From positions 124,001-188,000 of the forward strand of contig OZ025757.1 in the NCBI GenBank assembly GCA_964019335.1: a stretch of 64,000 nt of DNA, given 5' to 3'. Below are positions 21,850 through 62,480 of the stretch, in pieces. This stretch comes from Diplonema japonicum. Lineage: Eukaryota > Protista > Euglenozoa: Diplonemea. The notes under the pieces are model-generated. The model searched no databases, was not told the origin of the DNA, and saw nothing but the letters and a program-made list of their open reading frames with translations. The position numbers and the translations under genes are program-made. Every line of letters begins with the position of its first letter. Within the stretch, counting starts at the first letter, position 1.

Positions 21850-24630
21850 CTAAGAGCTGCCAGGAGGTGCGGTCCACTCCACCACCTCAGAGCCAGGAGT
21901 GTTCTTCACCACCTTCCCCAAGACACCATCGGTGAGCCAGTTCGCCCCTGAACCAGCAAAGGTCATTGTGACTGCATGAACCTGCCAGCCATCCCCACCC
22001 TGTGCCCTGATCCGAACCTTGCGGGGGTGCTGCAGGATCCCAGTTGCAGTCATCACATGAACACTCCCCTGGGCAGGGGCCGCCACACTCCCCACAACCT
22101 GAACACTCCCATCCCAGTACTCCACCTCAATGGGGAAGGAGTGCGACGACTCTGCATAAGTTTCCGAAGCGGTCACCACCCCCACAGTGAAGTCCATCGA
22201 GTTCAAGGCGTACATGTTGCTCCGGAAGGTCCCCCCACAGAAGGCCTCCCCGTTCCCGATGCAAGGAGCGTTGCAATCCCCACTTGCAGCCGGAGGCTTG
22301 GAGCGGATGTCCTGCGTGCACCAGCAGGTGTCTCCCTTCTGTATCCCAAAGAACTTGTAGTTCCGAACAGTGTCCCCACCACAGTACGCTGCACAGTGCT
22401 CAACTGACATCCCTGCAGAGACGTACGCCGTCCTCCCAACATTGTCCTCGAAGCACCCCACATGAGAGAAGCGGACAGAACTCTTCACAGCCATGTTCCG
22501 GTGCCCGCTGGTTGCGCAGTCCGCTGCGTTTGTTCTGACCGACTGCGCAAGTTCAGAAGCCCCGCCGCACCAACATTCGGATGTGAAGAGCGTCCCTGCA
22601 TGGGTGTGCCCGGCGGTGTTACACAGTGCAAAGCACTGCTGTGGTGTATAGGCTGCGACGCTCCTCGACTTCAGGGCACGGTAGTCGGCGAAGCATCCTA
22701 TGTCGTAGGACAGTGAGGCTGGTGCGTCGGGTCTGATAAAAAAGGTACTGAAACCGTAAAAGATGTTGCTGGGGTGAGCATTTAAAAGGGGGGGGGCACC
22801 TACAAGGAGCACACCGTGGGCCGCGTGCAGGAAAGGACGCCCGAAATATTCGACAGCGGACGCCGACCCAACAATAGTGGGCGCTAGTGGTGTGCTGATG
22901 TCACGGATCAAGACGCTGGAATCTGTCGTCACAAAGAGGTCGTCCCCGTAGATTGCCATCGCTGCAACGTCGGACAGCAGGCTTTGAACCGCCGTTTGAA
23001 CAGGAGAAGCAGGTGTGTTGACGTTGACAACAACTAAACCCGCAGCCAAGACGTACGCAGCCAACCCCGACTGCGACACCTCCACATCCCTTGCCCCAGC
23101 GATGTCAAGCTTCGCAAGAAACTTCGGCGACGACGGTTCACACACATCGAGAACCTGCAGACTGTCTCCGTCCGCAATGTAAGCGGTTGTCCCTGACACC
23201 GCCACTGCCTTCGCATCGTTTGGAGTGTTGTAACGGCCAATTCTTCGCATCACCGGGCCACCGATATCGTACATCTCAAGCCCGCGACTGCCGCAAGCGA
23301 GATACATCACATTCTCAATAATGAGAATGTTTTGAACACCCGGAAGGTGGAGCCTCTGAAGAACGTTGAAGTAAGGGAGGTTTGAAATATCGATGACGAA
23401 CACCTCAGTGGGCCCAGCGACGTAAAGGCGCAACCCGACGTTAGCCAACGACACGACCCGGTGCGCGTAAGGAAAGAAACCGTTCATTTTTCGAGAACTT
23501 GTGAAAAAATCGATCCCAAGAGAAATGCTTGCCACATAAAGGTCCTCAGAGACAACATGAACGCGAGGCGGGTTTCTGTCGGGAATCGGGAGATATGAAT
23601 CAGACAGCATTCCGTCCGGTTTTAATTTGTACATTTGGCTGTCTCTGTACAGAAAGACTCCCTTTGCTGTAGCTTGCAGACCATGGTACGGTCCACCTGT
23701 TCGAAGGTTATGTGTTACAATCAAGCTTGGTCTCGCCTCCGACAGTGAATAAACGCTTAGCCTGTTGTCGAAAAATAGAACGTAGAGCAGATTTGAAACA
23801 GGGTCTACATCGATTTCCTCAATGGTGGCGGTTGAGTCAAAAGAAGTGAGAGAACGGGTGGGCCGGTAGTTCATTCTGCCAAGGTTGCCTTGTTCGAAAA
23901 AGTGAATGGCGGAAGCGGTCCTTGTTACAATCTTGTAAGAGGAATCGTAAACACGCATTTCCGCAGCGTTCGACATCCCTTCCACACCGCCTCTGTCATC
24001 GATTATGGCGAAGGTTTGAAAACGCCAGTTGTTTGCCAATGTGGGCAGGTCGATGACGGTCATTTTCGAGCTGTCCCTTATGAAAGCATAGTTCGAGGAA
24101 AAGATTGTTTCAACCGATCCGAATGGAACAACGTCAACGTAAACCGGGGTGAACCTGTTCGAAATATCCATTATGATAACGTTTGTCGTAGCGATATACA
24201 TTGCATTTTCAGCAATGGCTACACTTTTCGGTGAGCTTCCAACGGAGTTGAGTTCTGTGTACCCTTTCAGGATTAAGTTGCTTGGGTCGGTACGGTCAAG
24301 TGCGTAAACGTGACGCGATCCAATCATGTATAAAGTATCGTTCCCAAACAGCTCCACCAGTAAAATTCTCTCTTCAAGCCCAGTGAACCTTTTGTATCCA
24401 CCCACCACCACAGGTTTGTCGGCATCCGTCATATCGTAAACAACAATTCCCTGCCACGTCACGGCATAGCCGATGTTCCCATCGATCTTCATTCTTCCCT
24501 CGGGACCCCTGTAACGCTCAGCGATCTGCTGGCCTTCGAAAAGCCTCGTGGAAGCATGCGCGAGATTGTTCGCCAACACAGCGCAACAGAAGAGGAACAC
24601 CCGTTGCAGTTTGCAAAAATGGAGCGTCAT
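21850..24630 (-). CDS. Secreted LVIVD-repeat / 2xWSC / PLAT-like protein, array copy 1 (subfamily A)
   Basis: 926 aa with a signal peptide. LVIVD-type repeats (GTTAYIADGDSLQVLDVCEPSSPKFL). WSC motifs IGCFAD..QQCFALC..ECWCG and VGCFED..MSVEHCAAYC..CWC..CNAPCIGNGEAFCGG. PLAT-like FTVGVVTAS..GGDGWQV. Confidence 0.85.
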   Translation of the reverse strand: MTLHFCKLQRVFLFCCAVLANNLAHASTRLFEGQQIAERYRGPEGRMKIDGNIGYAVTWQGIVVYDMTDADKPVVVGGYKRFTGLEERILLVELFGNDTLYMIGSRHVYALDRTDPSNLILKGYTELNSVGSSPKSVAIAENAMYIATTNVIIMDISNRFTPVYVDVVPFGSVETIFSSNYAFIRDSSKMTVIDLPTLANNWRFQTFAIIDDRGGVEGMSNAAEMRVYDSSYKIVTRTASAIHFFEQGNLGRMNYRPTRSLTSFDSTATIEEIDVDPVSNLLYVLFFDNRLSVYSLSEARPSLIVTHNLRTGGPYHGLQATAKGVFLYRDSQMYKLKPDGMLSDSYLPIPDRNPPRVHVVSEDLYVASISLGIDFFTSSRKMNGFFPYAHRVVSLANVGLRLYVAGPTEVFVIDISNLPYFNVLQRLHLPGVQNILIIENVMYLACGSRGLEMYDIGGPVMRRIGRYNTPNDAKAVAVSGTTAYIADGDSLQVLDVCEPSSPKFLAKLDIAGARDVEVSQSGLAAYVLAAGLVVVNVNTPASPVQTAVQSLLSDVAAMAIYGDDLFVTTDSSVLIRDISTPLAPTIVGSASAVEYFGRPFLHAAHGVLLVGAPPLLNAHPSNIFYGFSTFFIRPDAPASLSYDIGCFADYRALKSRSVAAYTPQQCFALCNTAGHTHAGTLFTSECWCGGASELAQSVRTNAADCATSGHRNMAVKSSVRFSHVGCFEDNVGRTAYVSAGMSVEHCAAYCGGDTVRNYKFFGIQKGDTCWCTQDIRSKPPAASGDCNAPCIGNGEAFCGGTFRSNMYALNSMDFTVGVVTASETYAESSHSFPIEVEYWDGSVQVVGSVAAPAQGSVHVMTATGILQHPRKVRIRAQGGDGWQVHAVTMTFAGSGANWLTDGVLGKVVKNTPGSEVVEWTAPPGSS

Positions 24631-24772
24631 TTTTTTTTTTTTTTTTTTTTTTCTTTTTTTTTTTTTTTTTCCTTTTTTTTTTAATTGAGGGATGGGGGGG
24701 GAAGAAAAAAAAACTTTTTCTTGAATTGAATCAAAGAGTATCTATGAACCCGGCCAGGCTAGAAGAGAGATA

Positions 24773-24804
<32 letters not shown>

Positions 24805-24976
24805 GGAACAACACACAGACACGGACACATCTCGCGACTCCTCAAGGTGCGGGTGAAGGGGGCACCTCAGCGGAAACTGTTCCTGACCACCACCGGTTTA
24901 AAAAAAAAAAAAAAAAAAATGTTATTGTTAATGACAACATGTCTTTTTGTTGGTAAAAAGCAGCGAAAGTTATTAT

Positions 24977-25030
<54 letters not shown>

Positions 25031-25031
<1 letters not shown>

Positions 25032-27714: not shown

Positions 27715-30489
27715 CTAAGAGCTGCCAGGAGGTGCGGTCCACTCCACCACCTCAGAGCCAGGGGTGTTCTTCACCACCTTCCCCAAGACACCATCGGTGA
27801 GCCAGTTCGCCCCTGAACCAGCAAAGGTCATTGTGACTGCATGAACCTTCCAGCCATCCCCACCCTGTGCCCTGATCCGAACCTTGCGGGGGTGCTGCAG
27901 GATCCCAGTTGCAGTCATCACATGAACACTCCCCTGGGCAGGGGCCGCCACACTCCCCACAACCTGAACACTCCCATCCCAGTACTCCACCTCAATGGGG
28001 TAGGTGTGTTGCGACTCTGCATTGGTTTCCGAAGCGGTCACCACCCCCACAGTGAAGTCCATCGAGTTCAAGGCGTACATGTTGCTCCGGAAGGTCCCCC
28101 CACAGAAGGCCTCCCCGTTCCCGATGCAAGGAGCGTTGCAATCCCCACTTGCAGCCGGAGGCTTGGAGCGGATGTCCTGCGTGCACCAGCAGGTGTCTCC
28201 CTTCTGTATCCCAAAGAACTTGTAGTTCCGAACAGTGTCCCCACCACAGTACGCTGCACAGTGCTCAACTGACATCCCTGCAGAGACGTACGCCGTCCTC
28301 CCAACATTGTCCTCGAAGCACCCCACATGAGAGAAGCGGACAGAACTCTTCACAGCCATGTTCCGGTGCCCGCTGGTTGCGCAGTCCGCTGCGTTTGTTC
28401 TGACCGACCTAGAAATTTCAGAACCCCTGCCGCACCAACATTCGGATGTGAAGAGCGTCCCTGCATGGGTGTGCCCGGCGGTGTTACACAGTGCAAAGCA
28501 CTGCTGTGGTGTATAGGCTGCGACACGCCTTGACTTCAAGGCACGGTAGTCGGCGAAGCATCCTATGTCGTAGGACAGTGAGGCTGGTGCGTCGGGTGAT
28601 ATGGTGAACCAGGCGAACTGCTTCTCTTTGTAAGTAGAGGTGGGGTACCCAGCTGCAAGGAGCACACCGTGGGCCGCGTGCAGGAAGGGACGCCCGATAA
28701 ATGTGGCATCGGCTGGCTCCGACCCAACAATAGTGGGCGCTAGTGGTGTGCTGATGTCACGGATCAAGACGCTGGAATCTGTCGTCACAAAGAGGTCGTC
28801 CCCGTAGATTGCCATCGCTGCAACGTCGGACAGCAGGCTTTGAACCGCCGTTTGAACAGGAGAAGCAGGTGTGTTGACGTTGACAACAACTAAACCCGCA
28901 GCCAAGACGTACGCAGCCAACCCCGACTGCGACACCTCCACATCCCTTGCCCCAGCGATGTCAAGCTTCGCAAGAAACTTCGGCGACGACGGTTCACACA
29001 CATCGAGAACCTGCAGACTGTCTCCGTCCGCAATGTAAGCGGTTGTCCCTGACACCGCCACTGCCTTCGCATCGTTTGGAGTGTTGTAACTCCCGATCTT
29101 GCGTATCATTGGACCACCGATATCATACATCTCAAGCCCGCGACTGCCGCAAGCGAGATACATCACATTCTTAATAACGAGAATGTTTTGAACACCCGGA
29201 AGACGGATCCTCTGAAGAACGTTGAAGTAAGGGAGGTTTGAAATATCGATGACGAACACCTCAGTGGGCCCAGCGACGTAAAGGTGCGACTCGAAGCTTG
29301 CCAACGACATGACTGGTTCCAAATAAGGATAGAACCCGCGCCGACTGCTGCCACCATATAAATCGATACCAAGGGAGATACTTGCTGCAAAAAGGCTCTC
29401 AGAGATGACATGAACCCGCGGCAGGTGTTTGCCGGGAAGCGGGAGATGAGAATCGGACAGCTGTCCGTTCGGCTTCAACCAGAACAGAACCTCATGCGAA
29501 GTCAAAAAGATCCCTTTTGACGTGACGTGCAGACTATGGTATCCCCAGCCTTGCCTAAGGGTATACGTTTCCACAAGTTTTTGGATACCTTCCCCAACAG
29601 AAAAAACGTGGATGAGATTATCCTGCAACACGTAAAGACGGTTTGTAACGCGGTCCAGACCCATGTCGATGACGGCCCCCTCCAGTTCGTAATAACCAGA
29701 GTTTTCGTATTCAAGGTGCAAGTACGTGTGGAAGAAGTTTAATTCGTGTGAGTTTGAAAGAACGAGAGATGCACCGGAGTTATAAACAATTATTACGTCA
29801 GCGTAATTCGCCCCGGGCGACTCGGGCCGGTCCGCGCTTATTGACCACCTGAACTCGAGCTCAAAAGGGTCAGATGCAGGTAAGTAGAAGATCGATATCC
29901 CCCGAGCGTTAGACGAATAAATGTAAGAATTTGCTTCTGAGAAAACGGCGGTTCTCATCGTGGTTCCACTTTCACTGTGCGCCCCTACAAAAACAGGGTT
30001 ATACCTGTCGGTGATGTCCATTTTAAGAAATCCGCTGTACCGCTGCGAACCAGGTGGGGGAGCGTACAGCGACCCTATGTACAAAGCATTGCCCGCGATA
30101 AATACGGAATACGCTGCGTAAACTTCGTCATACGGGTCCTGTCGTCTGCCGGACCCTTTTAGGACCAGCTTGCTTGGGTCGGTGCGGTCCAGTACATAAA
30201 CGTTTTCTGTCGCAATCAGGTACAACAGGTTATCGTCAAGGAGCTCTACTGCAAAACCGCGTTCCCTGTAACCTGCCGCCCACCCGCTTATCAGAACAGG
30301 GCTGTTGGTGTCTGTCAGGTTGTACACGAGAATACCCTGCCATGCTGCAACGTAGCCTATAGAACCTTCCACTTTTATATCCCATGCCTGTGAGTAAGAT
30401 TGCGAAATTTGGCCCCCGATTAGCCTCGTCGCAGCGTGGACGGTGTTGCCCGCTTGCAGGACGCAGGACAGGATCAACAGGAGCTTCAT
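27715..30489 (-). CDS. Secreted LVIVD/2xWSC/PLAT-like protein, copy 2 (subfamily A)
   Basis: True ATG at 30489 (MKLLLILSCVLQAG), after a poly-A leader. Same architecture as copy 1; ends TAPPGSS. Confidence 0.85.
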   Translation of the reverse strand: MKLLLILSCVLQAGNTVHAATRLIGGQISQSYSQAWDIKVEGSIGYVAAWQGILVYNLTDTNSPVLISGWAAGYRERGFAVELLDDNLLYLIATENVYVLDRTDPSKLVLKGSGRRQDPYDEVYAAYSVFIAGNALYIGSLYAPPPGSQRYSGFLKMDITDRYNPVFVGAHSESGTTMRTAVFSEANSYIYSSNARGISIFYLPASDPFELEFRWSISADRPESPGANYADVIIVYNSGASLVLSNSHELNFFHTYLHLEYENSGYYELEGAVIDMGLDRVTNRLYVLQDNLIHVFSVGEGIQKLVETYTLRQGWGYHSLHVTSKGIFLTSHEVLFWLKPNGQLSDSHLPLPGKHLPRVHVISESLFAASISLGIDLYGGSSRRGFYPYLEPVMSLASFESHLYVAGPTEVFVIDISNLPYFNVLQRIRLPGVQNILVIKNVMYLACGSRGLEMYDIGGPMIRKIGSYNTPNDAKAVAVSGTTAYIADGDSLQVLDVCEPSSPKFLAKLDIAGARDVEVSQSGLAAYVLAAGLVVVNVNTPASPVQTAVQSLLSDVAAMAIYGDDLFVTTDSSVLIRDISTPLAPTIVGSEPADATFIGRPFLHAAHGVLLAAGYPTSTYKEKQFAWFTISPDAPASLSYDIGCFADYRALKSRRVAAYTPQQCFALCNTAGHTHAGTLFTSECWCGRGSEISRSVRTNAADCATSGHRNMAVKSSVRFSHVGCFEDNVGRTAYVSAGMSVEHCAAYCGGDTVRNYKFFGIQKGDTCWCTQDIRSKPPAASGDCNAPCIGNGEAFCGGTFRSNMYALNSMDFTVGVVTASETNAESQHTYPIEVEYWDGSVQVVGSVAAPAQGSVHVMTATGILQHPRKVRIRAQGGDGWKVHAVTMTFAGSGANWLTDGVLGKVVKNTPGSEVVEWTAPPGSS

Positions 30490-31385: not shown

Positions 31386-34112
31386 CTAAGAGCTGCCAGG
31401 AGGTGCGGTCCACTCCACCACCTCAGAGCCAGGGGTGTTCTTCACCACCTTCCCCAAGACACCATCGGTGAGCCAGTTCGCCCCTGAACCAGCAAAGGTC
31501 ATTGTGACTGCATGAACCTTCCAGCCATCCCCACCCTGTGCCCTGATCCGAACCTTGCGGGGGTGCTGCAGGATCCCAGTTGCAGTCATCACATGAACAC
31601 TCCCCTGGGCAGGGGCCGCCACACTCCCCACAACCTGAACACTCCCATCCCAGTACTCCACCTCAATGGGGTAGGTGTGTTGCGACTCTGCATTGGTTTC
31701 CGAAGCGGTCACCACCCCCACAGTGAAGTCCATCGAGTTCAAGGCGTACATGTTGCTCCGGAAGGTCCCCCCACAGAAGGCCTCCCCGTTCCCGATGCAA
31801 GGAGCGTTGCAATCCCCACTTGCAGCCGGAGGCTTGGAACGGATGTCCTGTGTGCACCAGCAGGTGTCTCCCTTCTGTATCCCAAAGAACTTGTAGTTCC
31901 GAACAGTGTCCCCACCACAGTACGCTGCACAGTGCTCAACTGACATCCCTGCAGAGACGTACGCCGTCCTCCCAACATTGTCCTCGAAGCACCCCACATG
32001 AGAGAAGCGGACAGAACTCTTCACAGCCATGTTCCGGTGCCCGCTGGTTGCGCAGTCCGCTGCGTTTGTTCTGACCGACTGCGCAAGTTCAGAAGCCCCG
32101 CCGCACCAACATTCGTTTGTGAAGAGCGTCCCTGCATGGGTGTGCCCGGCGGTGTTACAAAATGCAAGGCACTGCTGTGGTGGGGTTGCGACACGCCTTG
32201 ACTTCAAGGCACGGTAGTCGGCGAAGCATCCTATGTCGTAGGACAGTGAGGCTGGTGCGTCGGCATCGAAATCAAACATTCTGTTGCCGAAGACAGAATC
32301 CGCTAACGCCACTGCATCCGACGACGCATGCAAGCTGGGTGCTCCCAGTGCGGGAGAGAAATCCCCCGTGCTGCCCACGATGGTGGGCACTAGTGGTGTG
32401 CTGATATCGCGGATCACTACAGCAGAGGCAGTTGTTATGAAGAGGCTGCTACCAGACAAGGCCATCTCAGCGTGTGCGTGGACGTCCTGTGTTGTGAAAG
32501 ACAGAGCCGAAGGGTTAGACGCCATTACAATGTGAAGCTTGCCATCGGAGAGGACGTAAACAACCGTGTCCTTAAAGAGAACGTCCCTTGCCCCAGCGAT
32601 GTCAAGCTTCGCGAGAAACTTCGGCGACGACGGTTCACACACATCGAGAACCTGCAAACTGTCTCCGTCCGCAATGTAAGCGGTTGTCCCTGACACCGCC
32701 ACCGCCCTCGCATCGTTTGGAGTGTTGTAACTCCCGATCTTGCGTATCAAATTTTCGTTGATTGAAAACACGGCAAGACCTGCTTTCCCGCATGCAGCAT
32801 ATAATAACCCACCAGCAATGTGCAAAGCCTGTACCTCAGAATAGAGAATTCTGTGAAGTAAAACCGGGCGAAACTCGATGTCCAGAACAAGTATCTCTGT
32901 AGCAGCCGCAACATATAGTTGGTTTCCAACCGACGCAAAGGCTCTGACCTCAAACGGGTAGTGGTAGTAGTCAAGAACTCTGAACCTGCCGTAAACGTCG
33001 ATCCCGTCCTCTTGAAAGAAAAAGGCTTTCGAGCGGGAGATAATGTGGGCCTTCCCAGGGTACAACTCTGGCAAAGGGAGCGAGTTCAAGACAGTCGATG
33101 ACTCAAGCCTGTAAAAAGAATTCGAGCTCGAAAAAAAAACAGCCCTTGGTGAAACAGACAGAAGAATCCCCCCAACGATAGGCGTAGAACTAACCAGCAC
33201 TGGCTGCGCAGCGTTGGCCAACGAGTAAACCATAATTTTTGAAGACACCACCACATAAAGCCGCTGGCTTCCTTCATCGGCCGACATGTCTGTAATGGTA
33301 CCACCTTGATCTAAAGACCATCCAGACCATTCGTACGACCACCGCCCATCTTTTACGTAAACGTTCAGGACGGACTTTCTAGCCGTGAACAGGAAGTTCA
33401 TCGATTGGTAAAAGACAAACTGCTGAAGGAACGCAAAGCCCGGGTGCACGGACCCCAGCATGGTGTATACTCTGCGGGTTCGCATCATCGCTCCATTGGT
33501 ACCCTCCGGAACGGTATAAATATGCAACCCATCAGCATCTGAGAAATAATATCCATCATTACCTGGGAAAACCGCAGTTACCACGCGCCTGGTGCTCATT
33601 CGGTACATTCCAATAAAAACCGGGTTGAAACGGTCGGTGAGATCGAGTTTCCAGACGTGGGAAAACCATTCCGACTCCGGCGGGGGGTTGGTTAAGGTTC
33701 CTACAAAAAAAGAATCCCCGTCGATTTCAGCAGAGAATAGTTGCCTCAAACCGTAATTGGTGCTGTGGTCTGGTGCAGATATAAGTCGTAAACTTGCAGG
33801 ATCCGACCTATCAAAAACATATAATTTTTGCGGGCCGACGGCGTAGAGGACGTCATTGTGGGTCGGAGAGAGAACAATTCTCCAAACATCTCCTATTTTG
33901 TACGTTCCAATGGTTTTGATATCGTTTAGGTTTGCTAGGTCGTAGACCCTGACCCCGTCAGGGCCCGCTGCGGTGTACCCAATGTTTCGATCTTGTCTCA
34001 TGAACCACAAGCTGAGCTTCGTTTTCTCTCGAAAACTGACCCCCCGCAGGTTTACCCCCGCTCCCACCGTTGCGAGGAATGTCAGTAGAATGAGTGAGAT
34101 GGTTATTTTCAT
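31386..34112 (-). CDS. Secreted LVIVD/2xWSC/PLAT-like protein, copy 3 (subfamily A)
   Basis: 908 aa with signal peptide MKITISLILLTFLATVGA and the same conserved C-terminus. Confidence 0.85.
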   Translation of the reverse strand: MKITISLILLTFLATVGAGVNLRGVSFREKTKLSLWFMRQDRNIGYTAAGPDGVRVYDLANLNDIKTIGTYKIGDVWRIVLSPTHNDVLYAVGPQKLYVFDRSDPASLRLISAPDHSTNYGLRQLFSAEIDGDSFFVGTLTNPPPESEWFSHVWKLDLTDRFNPVFIGMYRMSTRRVVTAVFPGNDGYYFSDADGLHIYTVPEGTNGAMMRTRRVYTMLGSVHPGFAFLQQFVFYQSMNFLFTARKSVLNVYVKDGRWSYEWSGWSLDQGGTITDMSADEGSQRLYVVVSSKIMVYSLANAAQPVLVSSTPIVGGILLSVSPRAVFFSSSNSFYRLESSTVLNSLPLPELYPGKAHIISRSKAFFFQEDGIDVYGRFRVLDYYHYPFEVRAFASVGNQLYVAAATEILVLDIEFRPVLLHRILYSEVQALHIAGGLLYAACGKAGLAVFSINENLIRKIGSYNTPNDARAVAVSGTTAYIADGDSLQVLDVCEPSSPKFLAKLDIAGARDVLFKDTVVYVLSDGKLHIVMASNPSALSFTTQDVHAHAEMALSGSSLFITTASAVVIRDISTPLVPTIVGSTGDFSPALGAPSLHASSDAVALADSVFGNRMFDFDADAPASLSYDIGCFADYRALKSRRVATPPQQCLAFCNTAGHTHAGTLFTNECWCGGASELAQSVRTNAADCATSGHRNMAVKSSVRFSHVGCFEDNVGRTAYVSAGMSVEHCAAYCGGDTVRNYKFFGIQKGDTCWCTQDIRSKPPAASGDCNAPCIGNGEAFCGGTFRSNMYALNSMDFTVGVVTASETNAESQHTYPIEVEYWDGSVQVVGSVAAPAQGSVHVMTATGILQHPRKVRIRAQGGDGWKVHAVTMTFAGSGANWLTDGVLGKVVKNTPGSEVVEWTAPPGSS

Positions 34113-50893: not shown

Positions 50894-50925
<32 letters not shown>

Positions 50926-51856: not shown

Positions 51857-54649
51857 TCAGGGAGCGATCCAGACCCCCAACCTTTGCCCTTCCTGATCCT
51901 TGATCCACGCCCCTGTCTCCCCATTGATATGCCACTTCACAGCCGTTGTGGTGGGACCGGAGAACTTCACGTGCTTCACATTCCACCCGTCCCCGCCCTG
52001 TTCCCTCAACCGCACCTCCCGAGGGAGCATCGCGGCAGTGGGGATAGTGAAGAGGGCGATCGACCCCTGAGCAGGAGCCACCACACTCCCCACAATCTGA
52101 ACACTCCCATCCCAGTACTCCACCTCAACGGGGAAGGAGTGCGCCGACTGGGAGTAGTCACCTGTCCCTGTCTGCACCTCCAGTGTCAAAGACACAGGTT
52201 TCAGAATGGAAACGATCGAGAGGGAAGTCTGCCCCCAGAGCCTGCACTCGTGTGAGTCGGCCGTGCACGAAGGGCAGCTCGCAGCAGGGGCACGTAGCGC
52301 CAGCCCGATGTCGTTGCCGCACCTGCAAAGGTCGTTTTGCATGCTGGAGTACGTCGATCCCTGTGCCCTGCACGTCTCGGAGCACTCCGACACTGTGAGC
52401 AATGAGCTCTGCAGAACGTGCGACGCTCCTGCAGGACCGTAATTTGTGTAACATCCCACGTGCACGGGGACCGCACTACGCACGGACACCCTCCCAGCAG
52501 CCCCTGTGGCTGTGCACTCCGAGGTGTCGCTACGGGTGCTCCCCACGAAGTCCGCAGAATTCCCGCAGCAGCACTCCACTTTGCCACCCGTCGTCGTCAG
52601 CCCGGAGCGTGTGTGGCCTTCAGAACCGCATGCCGACGCGCACCCCTCCGCCGTCACCGCAGCAATGATCACCCTGATGGGCATAATGGGGTTCCCGTTC
52701 ATCACCTCATGCAGGCATCCCATTTCGTTCCCGGGGTACTGAACCGATCTTGAAATGGTCAGCCTCTGGAGGCCGTTGTTGGTGTCCGCAATGAACAGGT
52801 GGTCGCCGCTGACGTGCACTGTCGACTGGCCCATGCCGGTGGCGAGGTTGGTTGTGCCCGTGGTCTTCGCGTACTGCTCATGCGGTGCACTGATGTCAAC
52901 GATGGTGACATAGTCATACAATGTGACGTACTTGAGAAAGGCTGTCTCCTCCGACACAGCCATCTGGAAGGGGTTGCTGAACTCAAAGGTCCCACCTTGA
53001 ACAGGCGTTGCTGGGGTGCTGACGTCAACAGCCGTGAACTTCGTCTCGCTGGTAACGTAGACAATTGTGCCCCTCACGTGAACATCCTTCGCACCAACAA
53101 TGTCGAACTTCCCAATGAAAGTGGGAACCGAAGTCGAACACACATTGACCAGCTGAAGGCTCGTCCCGTCCGCAATGTAAGCGGTTGTCCCTGATACAGT
53201 CACCGCCTTCGCAGTCCCTGGTGTGTCGAAGACACCCAAACGGCGCATCGGGCTGTTCTCTGTGTCCAGGATCACAAGACCAGCCGACCCACAAGCAAGA
53301 TACAAAGTGCTGCCCTCCACATACATATCTTCAACACCATGCTGCGAGTAGATCTCCAAGAGGAGGGGGGCCGCAGGGTTGCTGACATCGAGGGTGAAGA
53401 CCTCCGAGGACGCGAAGTAAAGCCTGTTCCCGACCACCTTCTCCGCCATCCCGTTGATCATATGCGGGTGGCTGTAAAACCCAACCCTCAGCATGCTGCT
53501 CCTGTCAAACACCTCAATACCATACGGGCTGGACACCTTGAACACGTGCGTATCGGACGAAGCAAGAAGGGGAACCTGCTCTGTAGGGAGGGCAGCGAGG
53601 GTCTGGAAGACCTCGGAGGACGAAGCTGTGGAGTACGCGAACTGCACGAAGCCCGCGTCTTGCAAAATGTAGTGATGAGCACCTGCTCTCGGCAAATGAA
53701 CAAGTCTGCGGTTTGTCGCGGTAGATGTAGTCTTCAAATGAAGAGGGCTCGTAGGGGATCCACCAAGACCGTTCGTCGTGTTAATGTTGTACCTCACTAT
53801 CTCATTAGTGGTGAGGACAAGGAGCCAGCCACCATCGCTTCTGATATCCACAATAGGCGCGGAAAGGATCGCTGTGAGAGTGATGGTCGACTGCCTGACC
53901 GCACCGGCGCTGCCCAAAGACAATACATAGAAAACCGAACCGCAACCGATGTAAAGGGAATCCTCGTGGTAAAAACTAAAGGCGGTCACGGGGCCTATCA
54001 AAGTGGTAGGAAGGGTCACGGTCCGATCACCACCCGCAACGGGAGCAGACGCACCGGTAGCAGCCAAAGTACCGGTGAAGGTTAGCCCATCTGATTTATA
54101 CATGAACTCTTCACTACCGTGCCTCACAGCCTGTGCCGATGAGGCAGCTGCGGAATACGTGTGTTCCCAGGTAGTTGTCAGAGCTGACAATGCAAACCTC
54201 TTGAACAGAGTGGTGGAGTGGAAGGAACCGATAAAAACGATCTCGGACGTGGAGGGTGCCCATTTGAGCTCAAGGCACTCAGACAGCACATGGGGGGAGT
54301 TATGTACTTCCGTCGGGCTATCCCAGTATTGCAGGCTGTACGCGGTGACCTCTTCGTGCGTTGCCACATATAACATCCCAGATACGACTATGACCCGTTG
54401 TGCGGGGTATCTCGTCTTCAGGGTTCCGCCCACTTTCGGGTTCGTTGGGATCGAGAGGTCATAGATGAGAACCCCATGGTGGCCCGCAGCAACATACCCG
54501 TGCTTCTCGTCCGCGCTAGTTGTAAGGTCTTTGAGGTCTACACTGTCCCTTGGTCTGTCGAAACGCCCTGAGAGGGTAGTGGCTGCTTCGCTGTCTACCA
54601 CCAACCAGCATAGTGCCACGATGAGAGCATGGGGCGATGCAGAACGCAT
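51857..54649 (-). CDS. Secreted LVIVD/2xWSC/PLAT-like protein, copy 7 (subfamily B)
   Basis: 930 aa with a signal peptide. GYVAAGHHGVLIYDLSIPTNPK repeats, WSC MGCLHE../VGCYTN.., PLAT-like LTLEVQTGTGDYSQS..GGDGWNV. Ends GVWIAP. Confidence 0.85.
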   Translation of the reverse strand: MRSASPHALIVALCWLVVDSEAATTLSGRFDRPRDSVDLKDLTTSADEKHGYVAAGHHGVLIYDLSIPTNPKVGGTLKTRYPAQRVIVVSGMLYVATHEEVTAYSLQYWDSPTEVHNSPHVLSECLELKWAPSTSEIVFIGSFHSTTLFKRFALSALTTTWEHTYSAAASSAQAVRHGSEEFMYKSDGLTFTGTLAATGASAPVAGGDRTVTLPTTLIGPVTAFSFYHEDSLYIGCGSVFYVLSLGSAGAVRQSTITLTAILSAPIVDIRSDGGWLLVLTTNEIVRYNINTTNGLGGSPTSPLHLKTTSTATNRRLVHLPRAGAHHYILQDAGFVQFAYSTASSSEVFQTLAALPTEQVPLLASSDTHVFKVSSPYGIEVFDRSSMLRVGFYSHPHMINGMAEKVVGNRLYFASSEVFTLDVSNPAAPLLLEIYSQHGVEDMYVEGSTLYLACGSAGLVILDTENSPMRRLGVFDTPGTAKAVTVSGTTAYIADGTSLQLVNVCSTSVPTFIGKFDIVGAKDVHVRGTIVYVTSETKFTAVDVSTPATPVQGGTFEFSNPFQMAVSEETAFLKYVTLYDYVTIVDISAPHEQYAKTTGTTNLATGMGQSTVHVSGDHLFIADTNNGLQRLTISRSVQYPGNEMGCLHEVMNGNPIMPIRVIIAAVTAEGCASACGSEGHTRSGLTTTGGKVECCCGNSADFVGSTRSDTSECTATGAAGRVSVRSAVPVHVGCYTNYGPAGASHVLQSSLLTVSECSETCRAQGSTYSSMQNDLCRCGNDIGLALRAPAASCPSCTADSHECRLWGQTSLSIVSILKPVSLTLEVQTGTGDYSQSAHSFPVEVEYWDGSVQIVGSVVAPAQGSIALFTIPTAAMLPREVRLREQGGDGWNVKHVKFSGPTTTAVKWHINGETGAWIKDQEGQRLGVWIAP

Positions 54650-55014: not shown

Positions 55015-55058
<44 letters not shown>

Positions 55059-55068
55059 AATTGCAATA

Positions 55069-55923: not shown

Positions 55924-58638
55924 TCAAGGAGCGACCCAGACCCCCAGCCTGTGCCCTTCCTGATCCTTGATCCACATCCCTGTCGCACCATCGACACGCC
56001 ACTTCACAGCCGTTGTGGTGGGACCGGAGAACTTCACGTGCTTCACATTCCACCCGTCCCCGCCCTGTTCCTTCAACCGCACCTCCCGAGGGAGCATCGC
56101 GGCAGTGGGGATGGTGAAGAGGGCGGTCGACCCCTGAGCAGGAGCTACCACACTCCCCACAATCTGAACACTCCCATCCCAGTACTCCACCTCAACGGGG
56201 AAGGAGTGCGCCGACTGGGAGTAGTCACCTGTCCCTGTCTGCACCTCCAGTGTCAAAGACACAGGTTTCAGAATGGAGAATGCTTGCCGATTGTACCGCC
56301 CGCACTTCTGCTGAGGGTCCGCGAGGCACGGAAAACTGCAGTCAGCTGCTGGAGCAAGTTTTTGTGTCCCGATGTTGTCCCAGCAATAGCACGAGCCCCT
56401 GCCCAGCACACCGGAGTAGGCTTTCCCCTTCGCCTGGCACAGCCCCGCACACCGCGACACCGTCACAAAGCTATTAGCCCCCGCGTGCTCCAACCTTCTC
56501 GTGTCGTCTTCTAAGAGGTCCACGTAGCACCCCACATGCACAGGCACCGCACTCCGTACAGCGATCCTCCCAGAGTCCACAGCCGAACACCCAGAAGCCT
56601 CACTGCGGATGCTTCCCACGAAATCCGCCGCCTCCCCGCAGCAGCACTCCACACTCGCAGCCATCGTTCGCAGACCAGAGTGCGTGAACTTCACAGAGCT
56701 GCACAATGACGCACACTGCACTGAAGTCATTGTGGTGAAGAACTTCCTGACAGGCAGGATATAGTTGTTGGCAGCCACCTCATGCAGACACCCCACTTCA
56801 CTGCCAGAGAAAGATGCAATTGTGTCGGTGATGGTCAGCCTCTGAAGGCCATGATGCATGTCCGCAATAAACAAGAAGGGGCCACTGACGTGCATCATGG
56901 GCTGCGCCGTGGTGCTGATCGCGGTGTGTTTTTCCTGGAGCTGCCAGTAGCTGATGTCGACTGTGCTAATGGTGCTTGGTCTGACGAGGAAAGCCGCCTG
57001 CTGCGTCACAGCTATCGTAAAGGAGGAGGTCTTGTAATTCCTCTGGGAAGGTGCTGCAGGTGTTTTGACATCCACCACCGCCATGTTTATGCTGTTCACA
57101 ACGTAGGCGGTCTTCCCCACCACCTCCACATCCCTCGCACCAGCAATGCTCACCATCCCAAGAAGCACAGGCGACGCGGGATCGCACGCCTCGACCACCT
57201 GAAGGCTCGTCCCGTCCGCAATGTAAGCGGTTGTCCCTGATACAGTCACCGCCTTCGCAGTCCCTGGTGTGTCGAAGACACCAAGAAAGCGCATCGGGCT
57301 GTTCTCTGTGTCCAGGATCATAAGACCAGCCGACCCACAAGCAAGATACAAAGTGCTGCCCTCCACATACATATCTTCAACACCACGCTGCGAGTAGATC
57401 TCCAAGAGGAGGGGGGCCGCAGGGTTGCTGACATCGAGGGTGAAGACCTCCGAGGACGCGAAGTAAAGCCTGTTCCCGACCACCTTCTCCGCCATCCCGA
57501 GGATCGCATGCGGATGGCTGTAAAACCCAACCCTCTGCAGGGTGTTCTTGTCAAACACCTCAATACCATACGGGCTGAACGCCTTGAACACATGTGTGGC
57601 AGACGAAGCAAGAAGGGGAGCAAGCTCAACGAGGGGAAAGGGGACGAATTTGATTTTAGAAGCGAAATCGTAAAAAAGCAGTGCCTCTGTGGTGACGACA
57701 TAGATGCTGCTCGCAACGGTGACGGCGCGTATGTTGCTCCCCACCGGATCGTTCGAACCGCTGTGTAAAAGGCTGGGGTGGTTGTGGTCCGTAACGGAGT
57801 ACACAAACACCGCCTTTGTGGTGACAACTGTCAATACAGCGCCAGATAGTCTAATGTCCACGACAGGGTCGGCTAAGGTTGTCGTGCGGAGGATAGTAAT
57901 ATCTGACTCACTTAAAGACACATAGTGGCAACGCGTCCCCTCTGCTAGGTAACCGCGTGTCCTCGAGGTACCCTCCACCATCTTGAAGACCGTGACATCG
58001 ACTCCGGAAATTGAGGGTGGGTAATAGAAGTAATAGCGTACATCAGGCAGCACTTCGATTCCGCTGAATATGAAGCAGTCCACGCTAATCCTCGTGGCCC
58101 TGCAGCTCCAATCGCTTTCATATGATGCCCCGATCCCGACGTAATTCAAGGATATCTGCGCGATCACACCGAGCTGAAGTGTGTACTTACTGAGGAATGA
58201 CTGCTGGTAATGTACGTTTATATCGTTACTGATTGAAAATATGATATTTCCTGAAAGGTAAATGAAAAATGGCGACACCGGGCGATGCGGTGTGCTGTAC
58301 ATCACCGTTGGTCTGTCCCAGAACTGCAGACTGTATCCGGTGATTTCGGCAGAGCCTTCTACGTACAGAACCCCGTTAACGACGAGGACCCTGTCTGCAG
58401 AGGATCTTGTCTTCAGGGTGCTGATCAGAATCGGGTTTCTCGCGGAGGCAAGGTTGTAGATCAGAACCCCTTGGGCCCCTGCCGCCACGTACCCGGCGTT
58501 GTTGTGCATCGCAATGTCGCTCAGTGTGACATTGTCCCTTGGTTTGTCAATTAGGCCCGACAGGGATGGTGCAGCCTCGCTGTCCAACACCAACCAGCAC
58601 AGTACTAAACAGAGAGCAAGGGACACAGGGCGCCGCAT
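55924..58638 (-). CDS. Secreted LVIVD/2xWSC/PLAT-like protein, copy 8 (subfamily B)
   Basis: 904 aa starting MRRPVSLALCLVLCWLVLDSEA and ending GVWVAP. Confidence 0.85.
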   Translation of the reverse strand: MRRPVSLALCLVLCWLVLDSEAAPSLSGLIDKPRDNVTLSDIAMHNNAGYVAAGAQGVLIYNLASARNPILISTLKTRSSADRVLVVNGVLYVEGSAEITGYSLQFWDRPTVMYSTPHRPVSPFFIYLSGNIIFSISNDINVHYQQSFLSKYTLQLGVIAQISLNYVGIGASYESDWSCRATRISVDCFIFSGIEVLPDVRYYFYYPPSISGVDVTVFKMVEGTSRTRGYLAEGTRCHYVSLSESDITILRTTTLADPVVDIRLSGAVLTVVTTKAVFVYSVTDHNHPSLLHSGSNDPVGSNIRAVTVASSIYVVTTEALLFYDFASKIKFVPFPLVELAPLLASSATHVFKAFSPYGIEVFDKNTLQRVGFYSHPHAILGMAEKVVGNRLYFASSEVFTLDVSNPAAPLLLEIYSQRGVEDMYVEGSTLYLACGSAGLMILDTENSPMRFLGVFDTPGTAKAVTVSGTTAYIADGTSLQVVEACDPASPVLLGMVSIAGARDVEVVGKTAYVVNSINMAVVDVKTPAAPSQRNYKTSSFTIAVTQQAAFLVRPSTISTVDISYWQLQEKHTAISTTAQPMMHVSGPFLFIADMHHGLQRLTITDTIASFSGSEVGCLHEVAANNYILPVRKFFTTMTSVQCASLCSSVKFTHSGLRTMAASVECCCGEAADFVGSIRSEASGCSAVDSGRIAVRSAVPVHVGCYVDLLEDDTRRLEHAGANSFVTVSRCAGLCQAKGKAYSGVLGRGSCYCWDNIGTQKLAPAADCSFPCLADPQQKCGRYNRQAFSILKPVSLTLEVQTGTGDYSQSAHSFPVEVEYWDGSVQIVGSVVAPAQGSTALFTIPTAAMLPREVRLKEQGGDGWNVKHVKFSGPTTTAVKWRVDGATGMWIKDQEGHRLGVWVAP

Positions 58639-59693
58639 AACGTTTTTTTTTTTTTTTTTTTTTTTTTTTTTCCCCTCTCAGTCTGAAATAGGAATTTTGC
58701 CTTTGTTTGTGCGTGCAGGAAAAGTAAAAAGATACGGGGGAATGATGAAGGGGGCGGCGGCTATGCTGGCAAGGAAACGCGTTTCCAAGTTTTTTTTTTT
58801 TTTTTTTTTCGAAAAAAAAAAGGAAACGGAAACGGAAACGTTTCCCCATTTCTTGCCAGCATAGCCCTGGGGGGGGGGGGGGGTTAAACAAATACATATT
58901 TGAGTTAAAAGAGGCCGGTATTGGTGGCGCCCTGCACAAGAACTGTACATATGCCACACCAACCAGTACGACGTTAGAACATGGGGGAGGGGGAGAAAAA
59001 AAAAAGGAGGCTTATTTTTTTTTTTTTTTAGAATTGAAGTTTTTGAATTGTTCAGAACCCTTGGACTCCTACGATTAGGAAGGAAAAAAAAAAAAAAAGA
59101 GAGGGTGAGACAACAAAAAGAAAGTCTCGCGTCCGTACTTAAGGTCTGATAATTTTGAGCAAAAGGGGAGGGGGGTGGTGGTTTTTTTTTTTTTTCTTTT
59201 TTTTTTTCTTTCTTTCCGTCAGAAGTACACAGTACTCCTGTAGATTGGACACTAATAGCTTTAAATGCCAACAAGCAGTGAAAGTTAACGCCACTCTCTG
59301 TTCCTACAATATCACAGAGGGCCCGCCGGAATGGCTGTTTCAACCATGTTGTCTGCAGCTTGTCCAATACAATAAAAAAAAAAGAGAGAAAAAAAAAAAA
59401 AAGCACGAGCAAGTCTTGGTTGTCGAGTGGGCCTATGAGTGACCGGAGGGTGATTCTGCTCATAGTCCCGAAGGTTTAATTGATCTAAAAGAGAAGGATA
59501 AAAACAGGGTCTAACCTTCTAGAGCATAGCTTCTGAGGGGAAAGGGGGGCAAAGAGAATCATCTAACACCTTGGTTCCCAAATAAAAAGAATAGGGTCTC
59601 TGACTCTCCTAACTAAACAAAACAACGGACTGTCGCAGTACATAAGAGAATGATATAGAGTGCCGTGGCTTTTTATCGACCACCTTGACCACT

Positions 59694-62480
59694 TCAAGGA
59701 GCGACCCAGACCCCCAGCCTGTGCCCTTCCTGATCCTTGATCCACATCCCTGTCGCACCATCGACACGCCACTTCACAGCCGTTGTGGTGGGACCGTAGA
59801 ACTTCACGTGCTTCACATTCCACCCGTCCCCGCCCTGTTCCTTCAACCGCACCTCCCGAGGGAGCACCGCGGCAGTGGGGATGGTGAAGAGGGTCGTCGA
59901 CCCCCGAGCAGGAGCCACCACACTCCCCACAATCTGAACACTCCCATCCCAGTACTCCACCTCAACGGGGAAGGAGTGCGACGACTGGGAGTAGTCACCT
60001 GTCCCTGTCTGCACCTCCAGTGTCAAAGACACAGGTTTCAGAATGGAGATTGCGTTCCGCAGATTCGCACCGCACTTCTGCTGAGGGTCCCTGAGGCACG
60101 GAACACTGCAGTCAGCTGCTGGAGCAAGTTTTTGTGTCCCGATGTCGTCCCCGCAATAGCACGAGTCCCCACCCTGCACACCAGAGTAGGCCTTCCTCTT
60201 CGCCTGGCACAGCCCCGCACACCGCGACACAGTCACAGAGTTGCCAGACTCCTCGAACTTCAACTTCCTCGCCGCTATGTCGTCCACGTAGCACCCCACA
60301 TGCACAGGCACCGCACTCCGTACAGCGATCCTCCCAGAGTCCACAGCCGAACACCCAGAAGCCTCGCTGCGGATGCTTCCCACGAAATCCGCAGCCTCCC
60401 CGCAGCAGCACTCCACACTCGCAGCCGTCGTCCGCAGACCAGAGTGCGTGTAGTCCGCAGAGCTGCACAATGACGCACACTGCACTGAATTGAGTGAGAC
60501 GATGTAGATGTTTCTGACAGGCAGGATATAGTTGTTGGCAGTCACCTCATGCAGACACCCCACTTCACTGCCAGAGAAAGATGCAATTGTGTCGGTGATG
60601 GTCAGCCTCTGAAGGCCATGATGCATGTCCGCAATAAACAAGAAGGGGCCACTGACGTGAACCGTGGGCTGCGCCGTGGTGCTGATCGCGGTGTGTCCTG
60701 CAAAGGACGGCCCCTGAGGAGAGCTGATGTCGACTGTGCTAATGGTGGTTGATGTGGTGAGGAAAGCCGCCTGCTGCGTCACAGCCATCGCAAAGGAGGA
60801 GGTCCCGTGCTGGTATGTCCTCACCAAAGAAGGTGCTGCAGGTGTTTTGACATCCACCACCACCATGTTCCTGTCGTCCGCAATGTAGGCGGTCTTCCCC
60901 ACCACCTCCACATCCCTCGCACCAGCAATGCTCACCATCCCAAGAAGCACAGGCGACGCGGGATCGCACACCTCGACCACCTGAAGGCTCGTCCCGTCCG
61001 CAATGTAAGCGGTTGTCCCTGATACAGTCACCGCCTTCGCAGTCCCTGGTGTGTCGAAGACACCCAAATGGCGCATTGGGGTGCTCTTTGTATCCAGGAT
61101 CACAAGACCAGCCGACCCACAAGCAAGGTACAAAGTGCTGCCCTCCACATACATATCTTCAACACCATGCTGCGAGTAGATCTCCAAGAGGAGGGGGGCC
61201 GCAGGGTTGCTGACATCGAGGGTGAAGACCTCCGAGGACGCGAAGTAAAGCCTGTTCCCGACCACCTTCTCCGCCATCCCGAGGATCGCATGCGGATGGC
61301 TGTAAAACCCAACCCTCTGCAGGGTGTTCCGATCAAGCACCTCAATACCATACGGGCTGGACGCTTTGAACACATGTGTGGCAGACGAAGCAAGAAGGGG
61401 AGCACGCTCTGTGGGGGGGAGAAAGGGGACGAATTTGTCTTGAGAACCGGAATCGTAAAGAAGCAGTGCCTCTGTGGTGACGACATAGGTGCTGCTCGCA
61501 ACGGTGACGGCGCGTATGTTGCTCCCCACCGGATCGTTCGAACCGCTGTGCAGGAGGCGGGGGTGGTTGTGGTCCGTAACGGAGTACACAAACACCGCCT
61601 TTGTGGTGACAACTGTCAATACAGCGCCAGCTAGTTTAATATCCACGACAGGGTCGGAGAAGAGCAGCGTGCGGAGGATAGTAATATCACCTTCCCATCC
61701 ACCAGCAGCCACACCGTCAAAAGTGGTGGAGTGCACCCCAGCGAAGGTCACATAATGGCAACGCGTCCCTTCTCCTAGGTAGCCGCGCGTATTCTCAGTA
61801 CCCTCCACCATCTGGAGGGCAGCCGTGGACGCTACGCCAGTGGTTGGGCTGACTTGTTTTGGGCCGATGTACCTAATGTGAAGCTTGCCTACAGGCATTA
61901 TATCAATTTTGTGGAAGTAAAAGCAGTTCACGCCCTGCGACCCGTCCATGCAGCTCCAACCGCGTTCGTATGTTGCTGCGGAACAGACCGTCGGATAGGT
62001 TAGCTGCGCGATCACACCGAGCTGAAGTGTGTACTTCCTTAGAAATGACTGCTGGTTGTTTGCATCGTTACTGATTGAAAATATGATATTATATGAGAAG
62101 CTTAGGAAAAATGGCGACGCCGGACGATGCTGTGCGCTGTACATCACCGTTGGTCTGTCCCAGAACTGCAGACTGTATCCGGTGATTTCGGCAGAGCCTT
62201 CTACGTACAGAACCCCGTTAACGACGAGGACCCTGTCTGCAGAGGATCTTGTCTTCAGGGTGCTGATCAGAATCGGGTTTCTCGCGGAGGCAAGGTTGTA
62301 GATCAGAACCCCTTGGGTCCCTGCCGCCACGTACCCGGCGTTGTTGTACATCGCAATGTCGCTCAGTGTGACATTGTCCCTTGGTTTGTCAATTAGGCCC
62401 GACAGGGATGGTGCAGCCTCGCTGTCCAACACCAACCAGCACAGTACTAAACAGAGAGCAAGGGACACAGGGCGCCGCAT
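59694..62480 (-). CDS. Secreted LVIVD/2xWSC/PLAT-like protein, copy 9 (subfamily B, recent duplicate of copy 8)
   Basis: 928 aa. The first ~115 aa and the 3' flank are nearly identical to copy 8. Confidence 0.85.
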   Translation of the reverse strand: MRRPVSLALCLVLCWLVLDSEAAPSLSGLIDKPRDNVTLSDIAMYNNAGYVAAGTQGVLIYNLASARNPILISTLKTRSSADRVLVVNGVLYVEGSAEITGYSLQFWDRPTVMYSAQHRPASPFFLSFSYNIIFSISNDANNQQSFLRKYTLQLGVIAQLTYPTVCSAATYERGWSCMDGSQGVNCFYFHKIDIMPVGKLHIRYIGPKQVSPTTGVASTAALQMVEGTENTRGYLGEGTRCHYVTFAGVHSTTFDGVAAGGWEGDITILRTLLFSDPVVDIKLAGAVLTVVTTKAVFVYSVTDHNHPRLLHSGSNDPVGSNIRAVTVASSTYVVTTEALLLYDSGSQDKFVPFLPPTERAPLLASSATHVFKASSPYGIEVLDRNTLQRVGFYSHPHAILGMAEKVVGNRLYFASSEVFTLDVSNPAAPLLLEIYSQHGVEDMYVEGSTLYLACGSAGLVILDTKSTPMRHLGVFDTPGTAKAVTVSGTTAYIADGTSLQVVEVCDPASPVLLGMVSIAGARDVEVVGKTAYIADDRNMVVVDVKTPAAPSLVRTYQHGTSSFAMAVTQQAAFLTTSTTISTVDISSPQGPSFAGHTAISTTAQPTVHVSGPFLFIADMHHGLQRLTITDTIASFSGSEVGCLHEVTANNYILPVRNIYIVSLNSVQCASLCSSADYTHSGLRTTAASVECCCGEAADFVGSIRSEASGCSAVDSGRIAVRSAVPVHVGCYVDDIAARKLKFEESGNSVTVSRCAGLCQAKRKAYSGVQGGDSCYCGDDIGTQKLAPAADCSVPCLRDPQQKCGANLRNAISILKPVSLTLEVQTGTGDYSQSSHSFPVEVEYWDGSVQIVGSVVAPARGSTTLFTIPTAAVLPREVRLKEQGGDGWNVKHVKFYGPTTTAVKWRVDGATGMWIKDQEGHRLGVWVAP

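Follow-up and report, generated by a model that had tools for sequence, protein, structure and literature searches.

β-propellers are common multivalent binding platforms, and PLAT domains dock secreted or soluble enzymes such as lipoxygenases, pancreatic and lipoprotein lipases and clostridial α-toxin onto lipid surfaces. WSC and PLAT domains are found together in the Polycystin-1/REJ family, in one large membrane protein whose PLAT domain is cytoplasmic, and the tandem arrays of kinetoplastids (GP63/MSP in Leishmania; MASP and mucins in Trypanosoma cruzi) combine homogenised coding blocks with divergent flanks. The LVIVD repeat was first described in cell-surface proteins of bacteria and archaea (PMC2447325). 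Proteins with WSC domains are glucan-binding lectins enriched in a fungal extracellular matrix (PMC9252488), and some fungal AA5 copper-radical oxidases are secreted and carry WSC domains beside a seven-bladed propeller (PMC11611005). Here we analysed a 64,000-nucleotide window (positions 124001–188000 of contig C110) from the genome of the diplonemid Diplonema japonicum, in which positions 21850–62480 hold nine genes (g1–g9) whose products join LVIVD propellers to two WSC domains and a PLAT-like tail. With a probability of roughly 55%, these genes belong to a lineage-specific D. japonicum family of soluble, secreted, ~920-amino-acid glycan-binding or adhesin-like proteins in which each paralogue has a propeller surface of its own.

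Domain architecture of the array proteins

The array proteins share one architecture: a signal-peptide-like N terminus, two LVIVD-type propellers read as seven-bladed, two WSC domains and a PLAT-like domain. LVIVD (PF08309) matches all nine copies at 39.8–82.9 bits against a Pfam gathering cut-off of 20.2, and also matches g10 and g11, two further members outside the window. WSC (PF01822) matches all nine at 33.7–67.7 bits (cut-off 27.8); eight copies show two stretches and g9 only one, and each WSC domain has six or seven invariant cysteines across the 11 sequences. An annotation made earlier from the letters of the window (the original prediction) had read LVIVD repeats and a double WSC in these proteins, and this reading passed the Pfam gathering scores for both families in 9/9, with WSC reported as double in eight. 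In g9, the copy chosen for a full-length AlphaFold model, the parts lie on the minus strand in the following order: a signal-peptide-like N terminus at 62409–62480 (amino acids 1–24, a hydrophobic stretch and then small residues, SEAA); propeller 1, the variable head with degenerate LVIVD-like blades, at 61371–62408 (amino acids ~25–370); propeller 2, with canonical LVIVD blades, at 60591–61370 (~371–630); the WSC pair at 60063–60575 (~636–806), in which the Pfam stretch covers 728–805 and the first WSC was placed by alignment to the other copies; and the PLAT/LH2-like β-sandwich at 59697–60047 (~812–928), for which the fold evidence comes from a model of the g1 tail.

Every copy begins with a hydrophobic, signal-peptide-like N terminus by a Kyte–Doolittle heuristic. 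With 19-residue windows, the same heuristic found no further transmembrane-grade segment and no hydrophobic C terminus in g1–g9, the C terminus being polar, and hence no membrane anchor of either the transmembrane or the glycosylphosphatidylinositol (GPI) type with its hydrophobic tail. The predicted combination of a signal peptide with the absence of a hydrophobic C-terminal tail is thus borne out at the level of this heuristic. Beyond its N terminus, g9 has a single marginal hydrophobic 19-residue window at amino acid 283 (1.71; threshold 1.6). N-glycosylation sequons are scarce in all eleven proteins, with 0–1 in most and no more than 3 in any, over lengths above 900 amino acids, where a rough estimate from composition gives about 5.

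The N-terminal ~600 amino acids model as tandem β-propellers, with the head as propeller 1 and the middle region as propeller 2. In the AlphaFold (AF2) model of g9, for which the 11-sequence family alignment served as input (mean predicted local distance difference test score (pLDDT) of 57), amino acids 40–630 consist entirely of four-stranded blades; pLDDT is 80–93 over amino acids 360–590, and the blades of propeller 1 have moderate to low confidence. The best Foldseek matches of this model are the tandem double propellers Utp21, Elp2, AIP1 and DDB1. VIA-align superimposed it on single seven-bladed propellers with Z scores of 27–29 (~270 residues, root-mean-square deviation of 2.1–2.5) and aligned 510–530 of its residues to two-propeller proteins. 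A blade hidden Markov model (HMM) iterated on the family detected 4–5 significant tandem blades at amino acids ~400–615 in every copy, including five at 41.6–52.7 bits in propeller 2 of g9, and 1–2 weaker ones in most heads, with one clear blade in that of g9. The head alignment retains the blade-core motifs GY.A..G..VYD, LYV.. and I.VYS between indel-rich loops. That the N termini fold as propellers, as had been supposed, is therefore supported by AlphaFold, Foldseek and VIA-align, at lower confidence for propeller 1. A sequence search found no solved LVIVD structure, and NCBIfam yielded only a sub-threshold match to choice-of-anchor-B.

The tail had been called PLAT-like, a call that stood for the fold (AlphaFold model, Foldseek and VIA-align) and failed at the Pfam threshold. 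The best PLAT (PF01477) match, in one of 17 domain copies, had an E-value of 0.077, and an ATS3 profile likewise remained below threshold (E-values of 0.15 and 0.0088). When a profile of the 17 domains was compared with the PDB, the top match was a lipoxygenase PLAT domain, weakly (5-lipoxygenase, E = 0.037; 15-lipoxygenase, E = 1.8), with the 5-lipoxygenase match spanning a G-x-D-x-W strand motif. The AlphaFold model of the g1 tail is of medium confidence (pLDDT of 68). All 20 of its best Foldseek matches are PLAT/LH2 domains from lipoxygenases, lipases and α-toxin (TMq of 0.53–0.67), led by 15-lipoxygenase (E = 8.3e-5, TMq of 0.67), and VIA-align placed eight PLAT domains at Z scores of 9.1–11.4, followed by a carbohydrate-binding module at 8.2, plant LOX1 at 7.7 and the rest at 5.7 or below. 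We regard the call as right at fold level: the models predict a divergent PLAT/LH2-like eight-stranded β-sandwich, by fold and not by sequence family membership.

An HMM of the PLAT-like module also found three further proteins that carry it elsewhere in the genome. One, on contig C77 (L003:3235-6909), is a 1224-amino-acid protein with a subtilase domain (Peptidase_S8), a CUB domain and six PLAT-like modules. A secreted-type protein on contig C47 (L004:3240-6001) has three PLAT-like modules first, then an extended PT-rich linker and three or more WSC domains, and continues past the fetched locus; another on contig C97 (L005:1298-3196) has three PLAT-like modules first, then PDTDAP-type repeats and a Cys-rich end. 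Because the module recurs in other secreted-type proteins of D. japonicum, on C47 together with WSC, it appears to be an extracellular module that travels with WSC. A protein homologue search with tail residues 805–926 found D. japonicum transcripts only and no relatives outside the species, and a search of the ESM Atlas with the tail gave no usable match.

Array layout, homogenised blocks and divergent heads

The nine genes of the window are intact and intronless, lie on the minus strand and encode 904–933 amino acids, lengths that assume that g2 and g4 start at the first ATG past a translated upstream poly(A) lysine run. Subfamily A comprises g1 (21850–24630, 926 amino acids, with Pfam LVIVD and two WSC stretches), g2 (27715–30489, 924 amino acids, with the ATG at residue 81 of the listed open reading frame (ORF)), g3 (31386–34112, 908 amino acids), g4 (39364–42150, 928 amino acids, with the ATG at residue 51 of the listed ORF), g5 (43908–46700, 930 amino acids) and g6 (48025–50826, 933 amino acids). 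Subfamily B comprises g7 (51857–54649, 930 amino acids), g8 (55924–58638, 904 amino acids) and g9 (59694–62480, 928 amino acids). Pfam LVIVD and WSC also mark g2–g8, and homogenisation among the A copies is weakest in g4. Searched in six frames, the complete genome (a 62.5-Mb assembly of 132 contigs) brought the family to eleven members, so that the nine co-oriented ORFs of the original prediction, all present, became ten in tandem and one dispersed. The tenth tandem copy, g10, lies just beyond the end of the window (L001:416-3163, that is G000:C110:188416-191163) and encodes a subfamily B protein of 915 amino acids; the dispersed g11 (L002:3670-6456 on contig C115, 928 amino acids) is not homogenised with the array. 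Amino-acid identity is 46–69% within subfamily A (g1–g6), 53–83% within subfamily B (g7–g9) and ~28% between A and B.

All large ORFs of the window are on one strand, so that the co-orientation of the genes is a regional property and not one specific to this family; gene clusters of this euglenozoan are co-oriented. When family proteins were compared by BLAST with the gene-masked window, no family fragments or pseudogenes were found in the spacers; those of 3.1 kb and 5.3 kb are homopolymer-rich AT sequence, in which no decayed copies or convincing genes were found. Each of the nine genes has an A-rich tract (runs of ~10–30 A) no more than ~45 nucleotides upstream of its ATG, for example at 24631–24680 and 62481–62520. 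This tract, which in most copies ends 0–6 nucleotides before the ATG, causes mechanical ORF calls to begin prematurely, within lysine runs. A polypyrimidine tract lies before it, and the two together resemble a trans-splice acceptor with an A-rich leader behind it.

In subfamily A the genes share a homogenised 3′ block, which in g1 occupies 21853–22713 on the minus strand (amino acids ~640–926, the WSC pair and PLAT-like domain) and in g2–g6 the last ~860 nucleotides. The A copies are 30% identical to one another in the amino acids of propeller 1 and 47% identical in those of propeller 2, against 89% for the WSC pair and 90% for the tail. Sliding-window Nei–Gojobori counts of synonymous (pS) and non-synonymous (pN) differences gave a pS of 0.06–0.17 in the last ~290 codons and a saturated 0.75–0.80 in the head. 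Because the tail is near-identical at synonymous sites too, protein-level constraint cannot produce its constancy. Among g1, g2, g3, g5 and g6, nucleotide identity in 50-codon blocks is 83–100% over the 3′ block and 93–100% from codon column 851, and the g4 tail is 75–96% identical to those of the other A copies. The g1 and g2 products are 69% identical, with nucleotide blocks at 93–100% from codon column 501 on, and the pair is a mosaic, with 93–100% identity in columns 501–700, 66% in 701–750 and 95–100% afterwards. Past the stop codon, the identity of the A copies drops from 99% to background within a few bases, and the 100%-identical start of g8 and g9 likewise ends just upstream of the ATG. 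A Sawyer-type run-length test that permutes polymorphic sites gave p < 0.002 in 10 of the 15 A pairs and also for g8/g9.

The contrast between a variable head and a constant tail, which the original prediction had drawn for the nine-gene array, with a near-identical end in subfamily A, is real in subfamily A and specific to it, whereas subfamily B has other blocks. There, a portion of propeller 2 and the final ~100 codons form the near-identical stretches: g7–g10 have columns 451–600 and 951–1050 in common at 83–100% nucleotide identity (93–100% in 951–1050), and across the WSC region g7 is 47–73% identical to the other tandem B copies. From column 451 to the end, g9 and g10 are 91–100% identical (99–100% in 9 of 12 blocks), whereas their heads are 32–56% identical; g8 and g9 are 99–100% identical in columns 1–150 and 56–83% in columns 151–350. 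Across all 50-codon blocks, the dispersed g11 stays at or below 69% nucleotide identity with every tandem B copy. Since g11 is not homogenised, homogenisation depends on tandem proximity.

Tail constancy thus results from concerted evolution among tandem neighbours, through gene conversion or unequal exchange. The low pS, the boundary at the stop codon, the permutation result, the mosaics and the unhomogenised g11 point to conversion, and speak against the proposal that the constant tail reflects an antibody-like constancy of function. The alignments further show that the conversion tracts stop at coding-sequence boundaries and that whole heads were exchanged, g9 being a g8-type N terminus on a g10-type body.

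Two comparisons escaped conversion, A versus B and g11 versus the tandem B copies. In the former, amino-acid identity is 16% in propeller 1, 35% in propeller 2, 32% in the WSC pair and 43% in the PLAT-like domain; in the latter the corresponding values are 32%, 52%, 51% and 63%. They show propeller 1 to be the fastest-evolving module as measured by alignment, about twice as divergent as the rest and with the most indels. In the same conversion-free comparisons, the WSC pair is not specially conserved, and no better so than propeller 2. Within propeller 1, the modelled strand positions are somewhat better conserved than the loops (0.21 versus 0.13). In the heads, pN (~0.5) is below pS (~0.78), and all eleven frames, each of more than 900 codons, are open. 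Open frames despite synonymous saturation, together with the lower pN of the heads, indicate that the heads are maintained by selection and not decaying. The ratio of non-synonymous to synonymous divergence (dN/dS) was dropped as a test for diversifying selection, for it is uninformative where head synonymous sites are saturated.

Transcription, relatives and competing explanations

The g1 product is 100% identical over 926 amino acids to the EukProt D. japonicum transcript P0109, and that of g7 is 99.4% identical to transcript P0002. Three more Trinity isoforms are chimeras with pieces of 100–200 amino acids that are 96–100% identical to g3, g5 or g9/g10; among the Trinity isoforms, the chimeric P0110 carries a g3-specific 200-amino-acid piece at 99–100% and P0111 a g5-specific piece at 99–100%. 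The exact and near-exact transcripts and the paralogue-specific pieces together indicate that RNA of at least five members was present in that transcriptome. Neutral decay of largely unexpressed copies, which had been named as fatal to the idea of a repertoire, is thus not what we observed: every copy has an open frame, and at least five members are represented among the transcripts.

The family is apparently restricted to this species. Searches with g9 and g1 against 5.8 billion clusters, with other diplonemid genomes outside their scope, returned full-length homologues from D. japonicum only. A profile search of 1.84 billion representatives, which a very distant relative could escape, likewise found full-length matches only in D. 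japonicum among the best 150 (at least 330 bits). All other matches in these searches cover the LVIVD part only (profile positions ~400–630; 12–53% of the query) or WSC repeats, and those with names outside D. japonicum come from bacteria, archaea or metagenome bins. A scan of JGI metagenome contigs for patterns from the family alignment gave 339 pattern matches, none of which was confirmed, and a literature search found no paper that links LVIVD with diplonemids or describes this architecture. The belief that the domain combination was undescribed has therefore held up across cluster, profile and metagenome searches, with no full-length match outside D. japonicum. The genome also has a cluster of LVIVD-only ORFs of ~620–800 amino acids on contig C62 (L006:8113-9966 and further matches) and many other LVIVD-only and WSC-only ORFs, such that this eukaryote has a broad expansion of LVIVD, a repeat found mostly in prokaryotes.

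From the roles of WSC, PLAT and propeller domains in other proteins, we take the array proteins to be extracellular binding proteins. They would act outside the cell as glycan-binding, lectin-like or adhesin-like molecules, in which the WSC pair may dock onto polysaccharide, by analogy with fungal secreted lectins, the PLAT-like domain may attach to a lipid surface or membrane, and the two propellers, propeller 1 above all, would supply a binding surface specific to each paralogue. The array would thus offer ~10 specificities on a common docking module. Such proteins could plausibly serve where the cell meets prey, the tissue of a host or detrital polysaccharide. D. japonicum is believed to feed on larger organisms or to invade them (PMC13598402), which makes contact with the matrix of prey or host a reasonable setting.

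The original prediction had gone further and seen an antibody-like repertoire for the recognition of prey, host or virus, for adhesion or for opsonisation; on this reading the heads would be diverse through diversifying selection and the tail constant through function. Ten to eleven distinct heads, all open, are in keeping with this, as are the roughly twofold greater divergence of propeller 1 even where conversion is absent, the better conservation of strands than of loops (0.21 versus 0.13), the exchange of heads between paralogues and the co-transcription of several copies. We nevertheless consider it rather unlikely: gene conversion, and not protein-level constraint, explains the constancy of the tail; the head and tail rule is broken in subfamily B; the proteins have no membrane anchor or signalling part; and a head pN of ~0.5 below a pS of ~0.78 carries no signal of positive selection, at sites where saturation blocks the test. 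The antibody analogy is not earned by present evidence. It is also distinctly unlikely, in our estimate, that the array is a true innate protist repertoire, in which selection would preserve the differences among ~10 propeller-1 heads of different specificity and segmental conversion would reshuffle them onto the homogenised WSC–WSC–PLAT module; if it were, the cell could tag different prey, host surfaces or microbes via one common handle.

A serious rival, although we judge it unlikely, holds that the proteins are secreted enzymes whose tandem propellers are catalytic (for example polysaccharide-acting or oxidative), with WSC and PLAT as carbohydrate-binding or surface-binding parts. Some AA5 copper-radical oxidases of fungi likewise combine secretion, a propeller and WSC domains (PMC11611005), the C77 protein with PLAT-like modules is a subtilase, the LVIVD part is closest to bacterial proteins, and an acquisition of bacterial metabolic genes has been reported for diplonemids (PMC10161547). 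Yet neither Pfam nor NCBIfam gave a match to catalytic propeller families (Kelch, glyoxal oxidase, glycoside hydrolases and lyases), no invariant polar cluster was identified, and an identity of 16% with many indels between paralogues would be unexpected for a catalytic domain. The notion of a variant surface coat, with antigenic variation as in parasitic euglenozoans and one or few copies expressed at a time, draws on the euglenozoan host, which may be parasitic or predatory (PMC13598402), on a family of tandem genes that shows segmental conversion and mosaics, and on the pairing of a variable with a conserved segment; it is very improbable given the lack of a GPI signal or transmembrane anchor by the heuristic, a family of eleven genes only and the presence of pieces of at least five paralogues in one transcriptome. 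Neutral decay of redundant duplicates, or an artefact of assembly, could be suspected because dN is close to dS in the young pair g8/g9 and repetitive arrays can be misassembled, but it is largely refuted, to the point of being scarcely credible, by eleven open frames of more than 900 codons despite saturated head synonymous sites, by independent transcripts that match g1 exactly and g7 at 99.4%, and by spacers without fragments.

Several points also count against the explanation that we favour, a family of soluble secreted glycan-binding or adhesin-like proteins with paralogue-specific propeller surfaces. With saturated heads, dN/dS cannot tell adaptive diversification from old divergence under relaxed constraint, and in the young pair g8/g9 a dN close to dS fits relaxed constraint, positive selection or imported tracts equally. 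The RNA evidence is indirect, drawn as it is from an assembled transcriptome that includes chimeric isoforms; six listed sequencing runs contain 76–91% of the words, and none of them is recorded as RNA. The model of the full-length protein is of poor quality (mean pLDDT of 57), with residues 118–219 of propeller 1 and the WSC region below 50, and the low confidence of residues 118–219 makes the count of seven blades for propeller 1 insecure. We know of no LVIVD propeller with a characterised ligand or activity. We infer the function, and the case for secretion is a hydrophobicity heuristic only.

Elsewhere in the window, a 1061-amino-acid ORF at 15871–19056 on the minus strand has no Pfam match and is E/K/Q-rich and unrelated to the array. 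Its product has a coiled-coil-like look, with acidic and polyQ runs, and the ORF accounts for a strong AT skew of −0.40 at 16–18 kb.

Comparison with known systems

Like the LVIVD proteins of bacteria and archaea, the array proteins have tandem LVIVD blades of ~40 amino acids that form a predicted β-propeller, they appear to be exported, and their propeller 2 is 30–40% identical to bacterial and metagenomic ones. They differ in having a eukaryotic host and in their partner domains: the bacterial proteins pair LVIVD with PKD, Ig-like, T9SS sorting, CARDB and other domains, and none pairs it with WSC and PLAT. With the fungal WSC lectins and AA5 oxidases they share predicted secretion and WSC, glycan binding by WSC being known for the fungal proteins. 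Unlike the AA5 enzymes, they have an LVIVD and not a Kelch propeller (no Pfam match to a Kelch or glyoxal/galactose oxidase family at E ≤ 0.01 in the nine copies), and their WSC domains lie C-terminal to two propellers and are followed by the PLAT-like domain.

The modelled eight-stranded β-sandwich of the tail resembles the PLAT/LH2 domains of lipid enzymes, but it is attached to modules of lectin type and misses the Pfam threshold. Polycystin-1/REJ proteins likewise combine WSC and PLAT in one protein; the array proteins, by contrast, have no transmembrane segment by the heuristic and no Pfam match to REJ, GPS or PKD-channel domains. In D. japonicum an LVIVD propeller, matched elsewhere in our searches only by proteins of bacteria and metagenomes, is fused to eukaryote-typical WSC and PLAT-like modules, a combination not found in ~15 billion proteins.

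The genetics of the locus is close to that of the kinetoplastid arrays, with which it shares a euglenozoan host, co-oriented tandem genes, conversion tracts that cover part of the coding sequence, divergent 3′ flanks, and variable and conserved segments in one protein. It differs from them in that the proteins are unrelated and have no GPI anchor by the heuristic, the family is small and the status of the host as free-living or parasitic is uncertain. The array is a variant of two known kinds, the domain-shuffled secreted lectin-like protein and the euglenozoan tandem array under concerted evolution. As a clean case of concerted evolution halting at the edges of coding sequences, with entire domains exchanged between adjacent genes, it cautions that synonymous sites should be checked before 'constant regions' are read as functional constraint.

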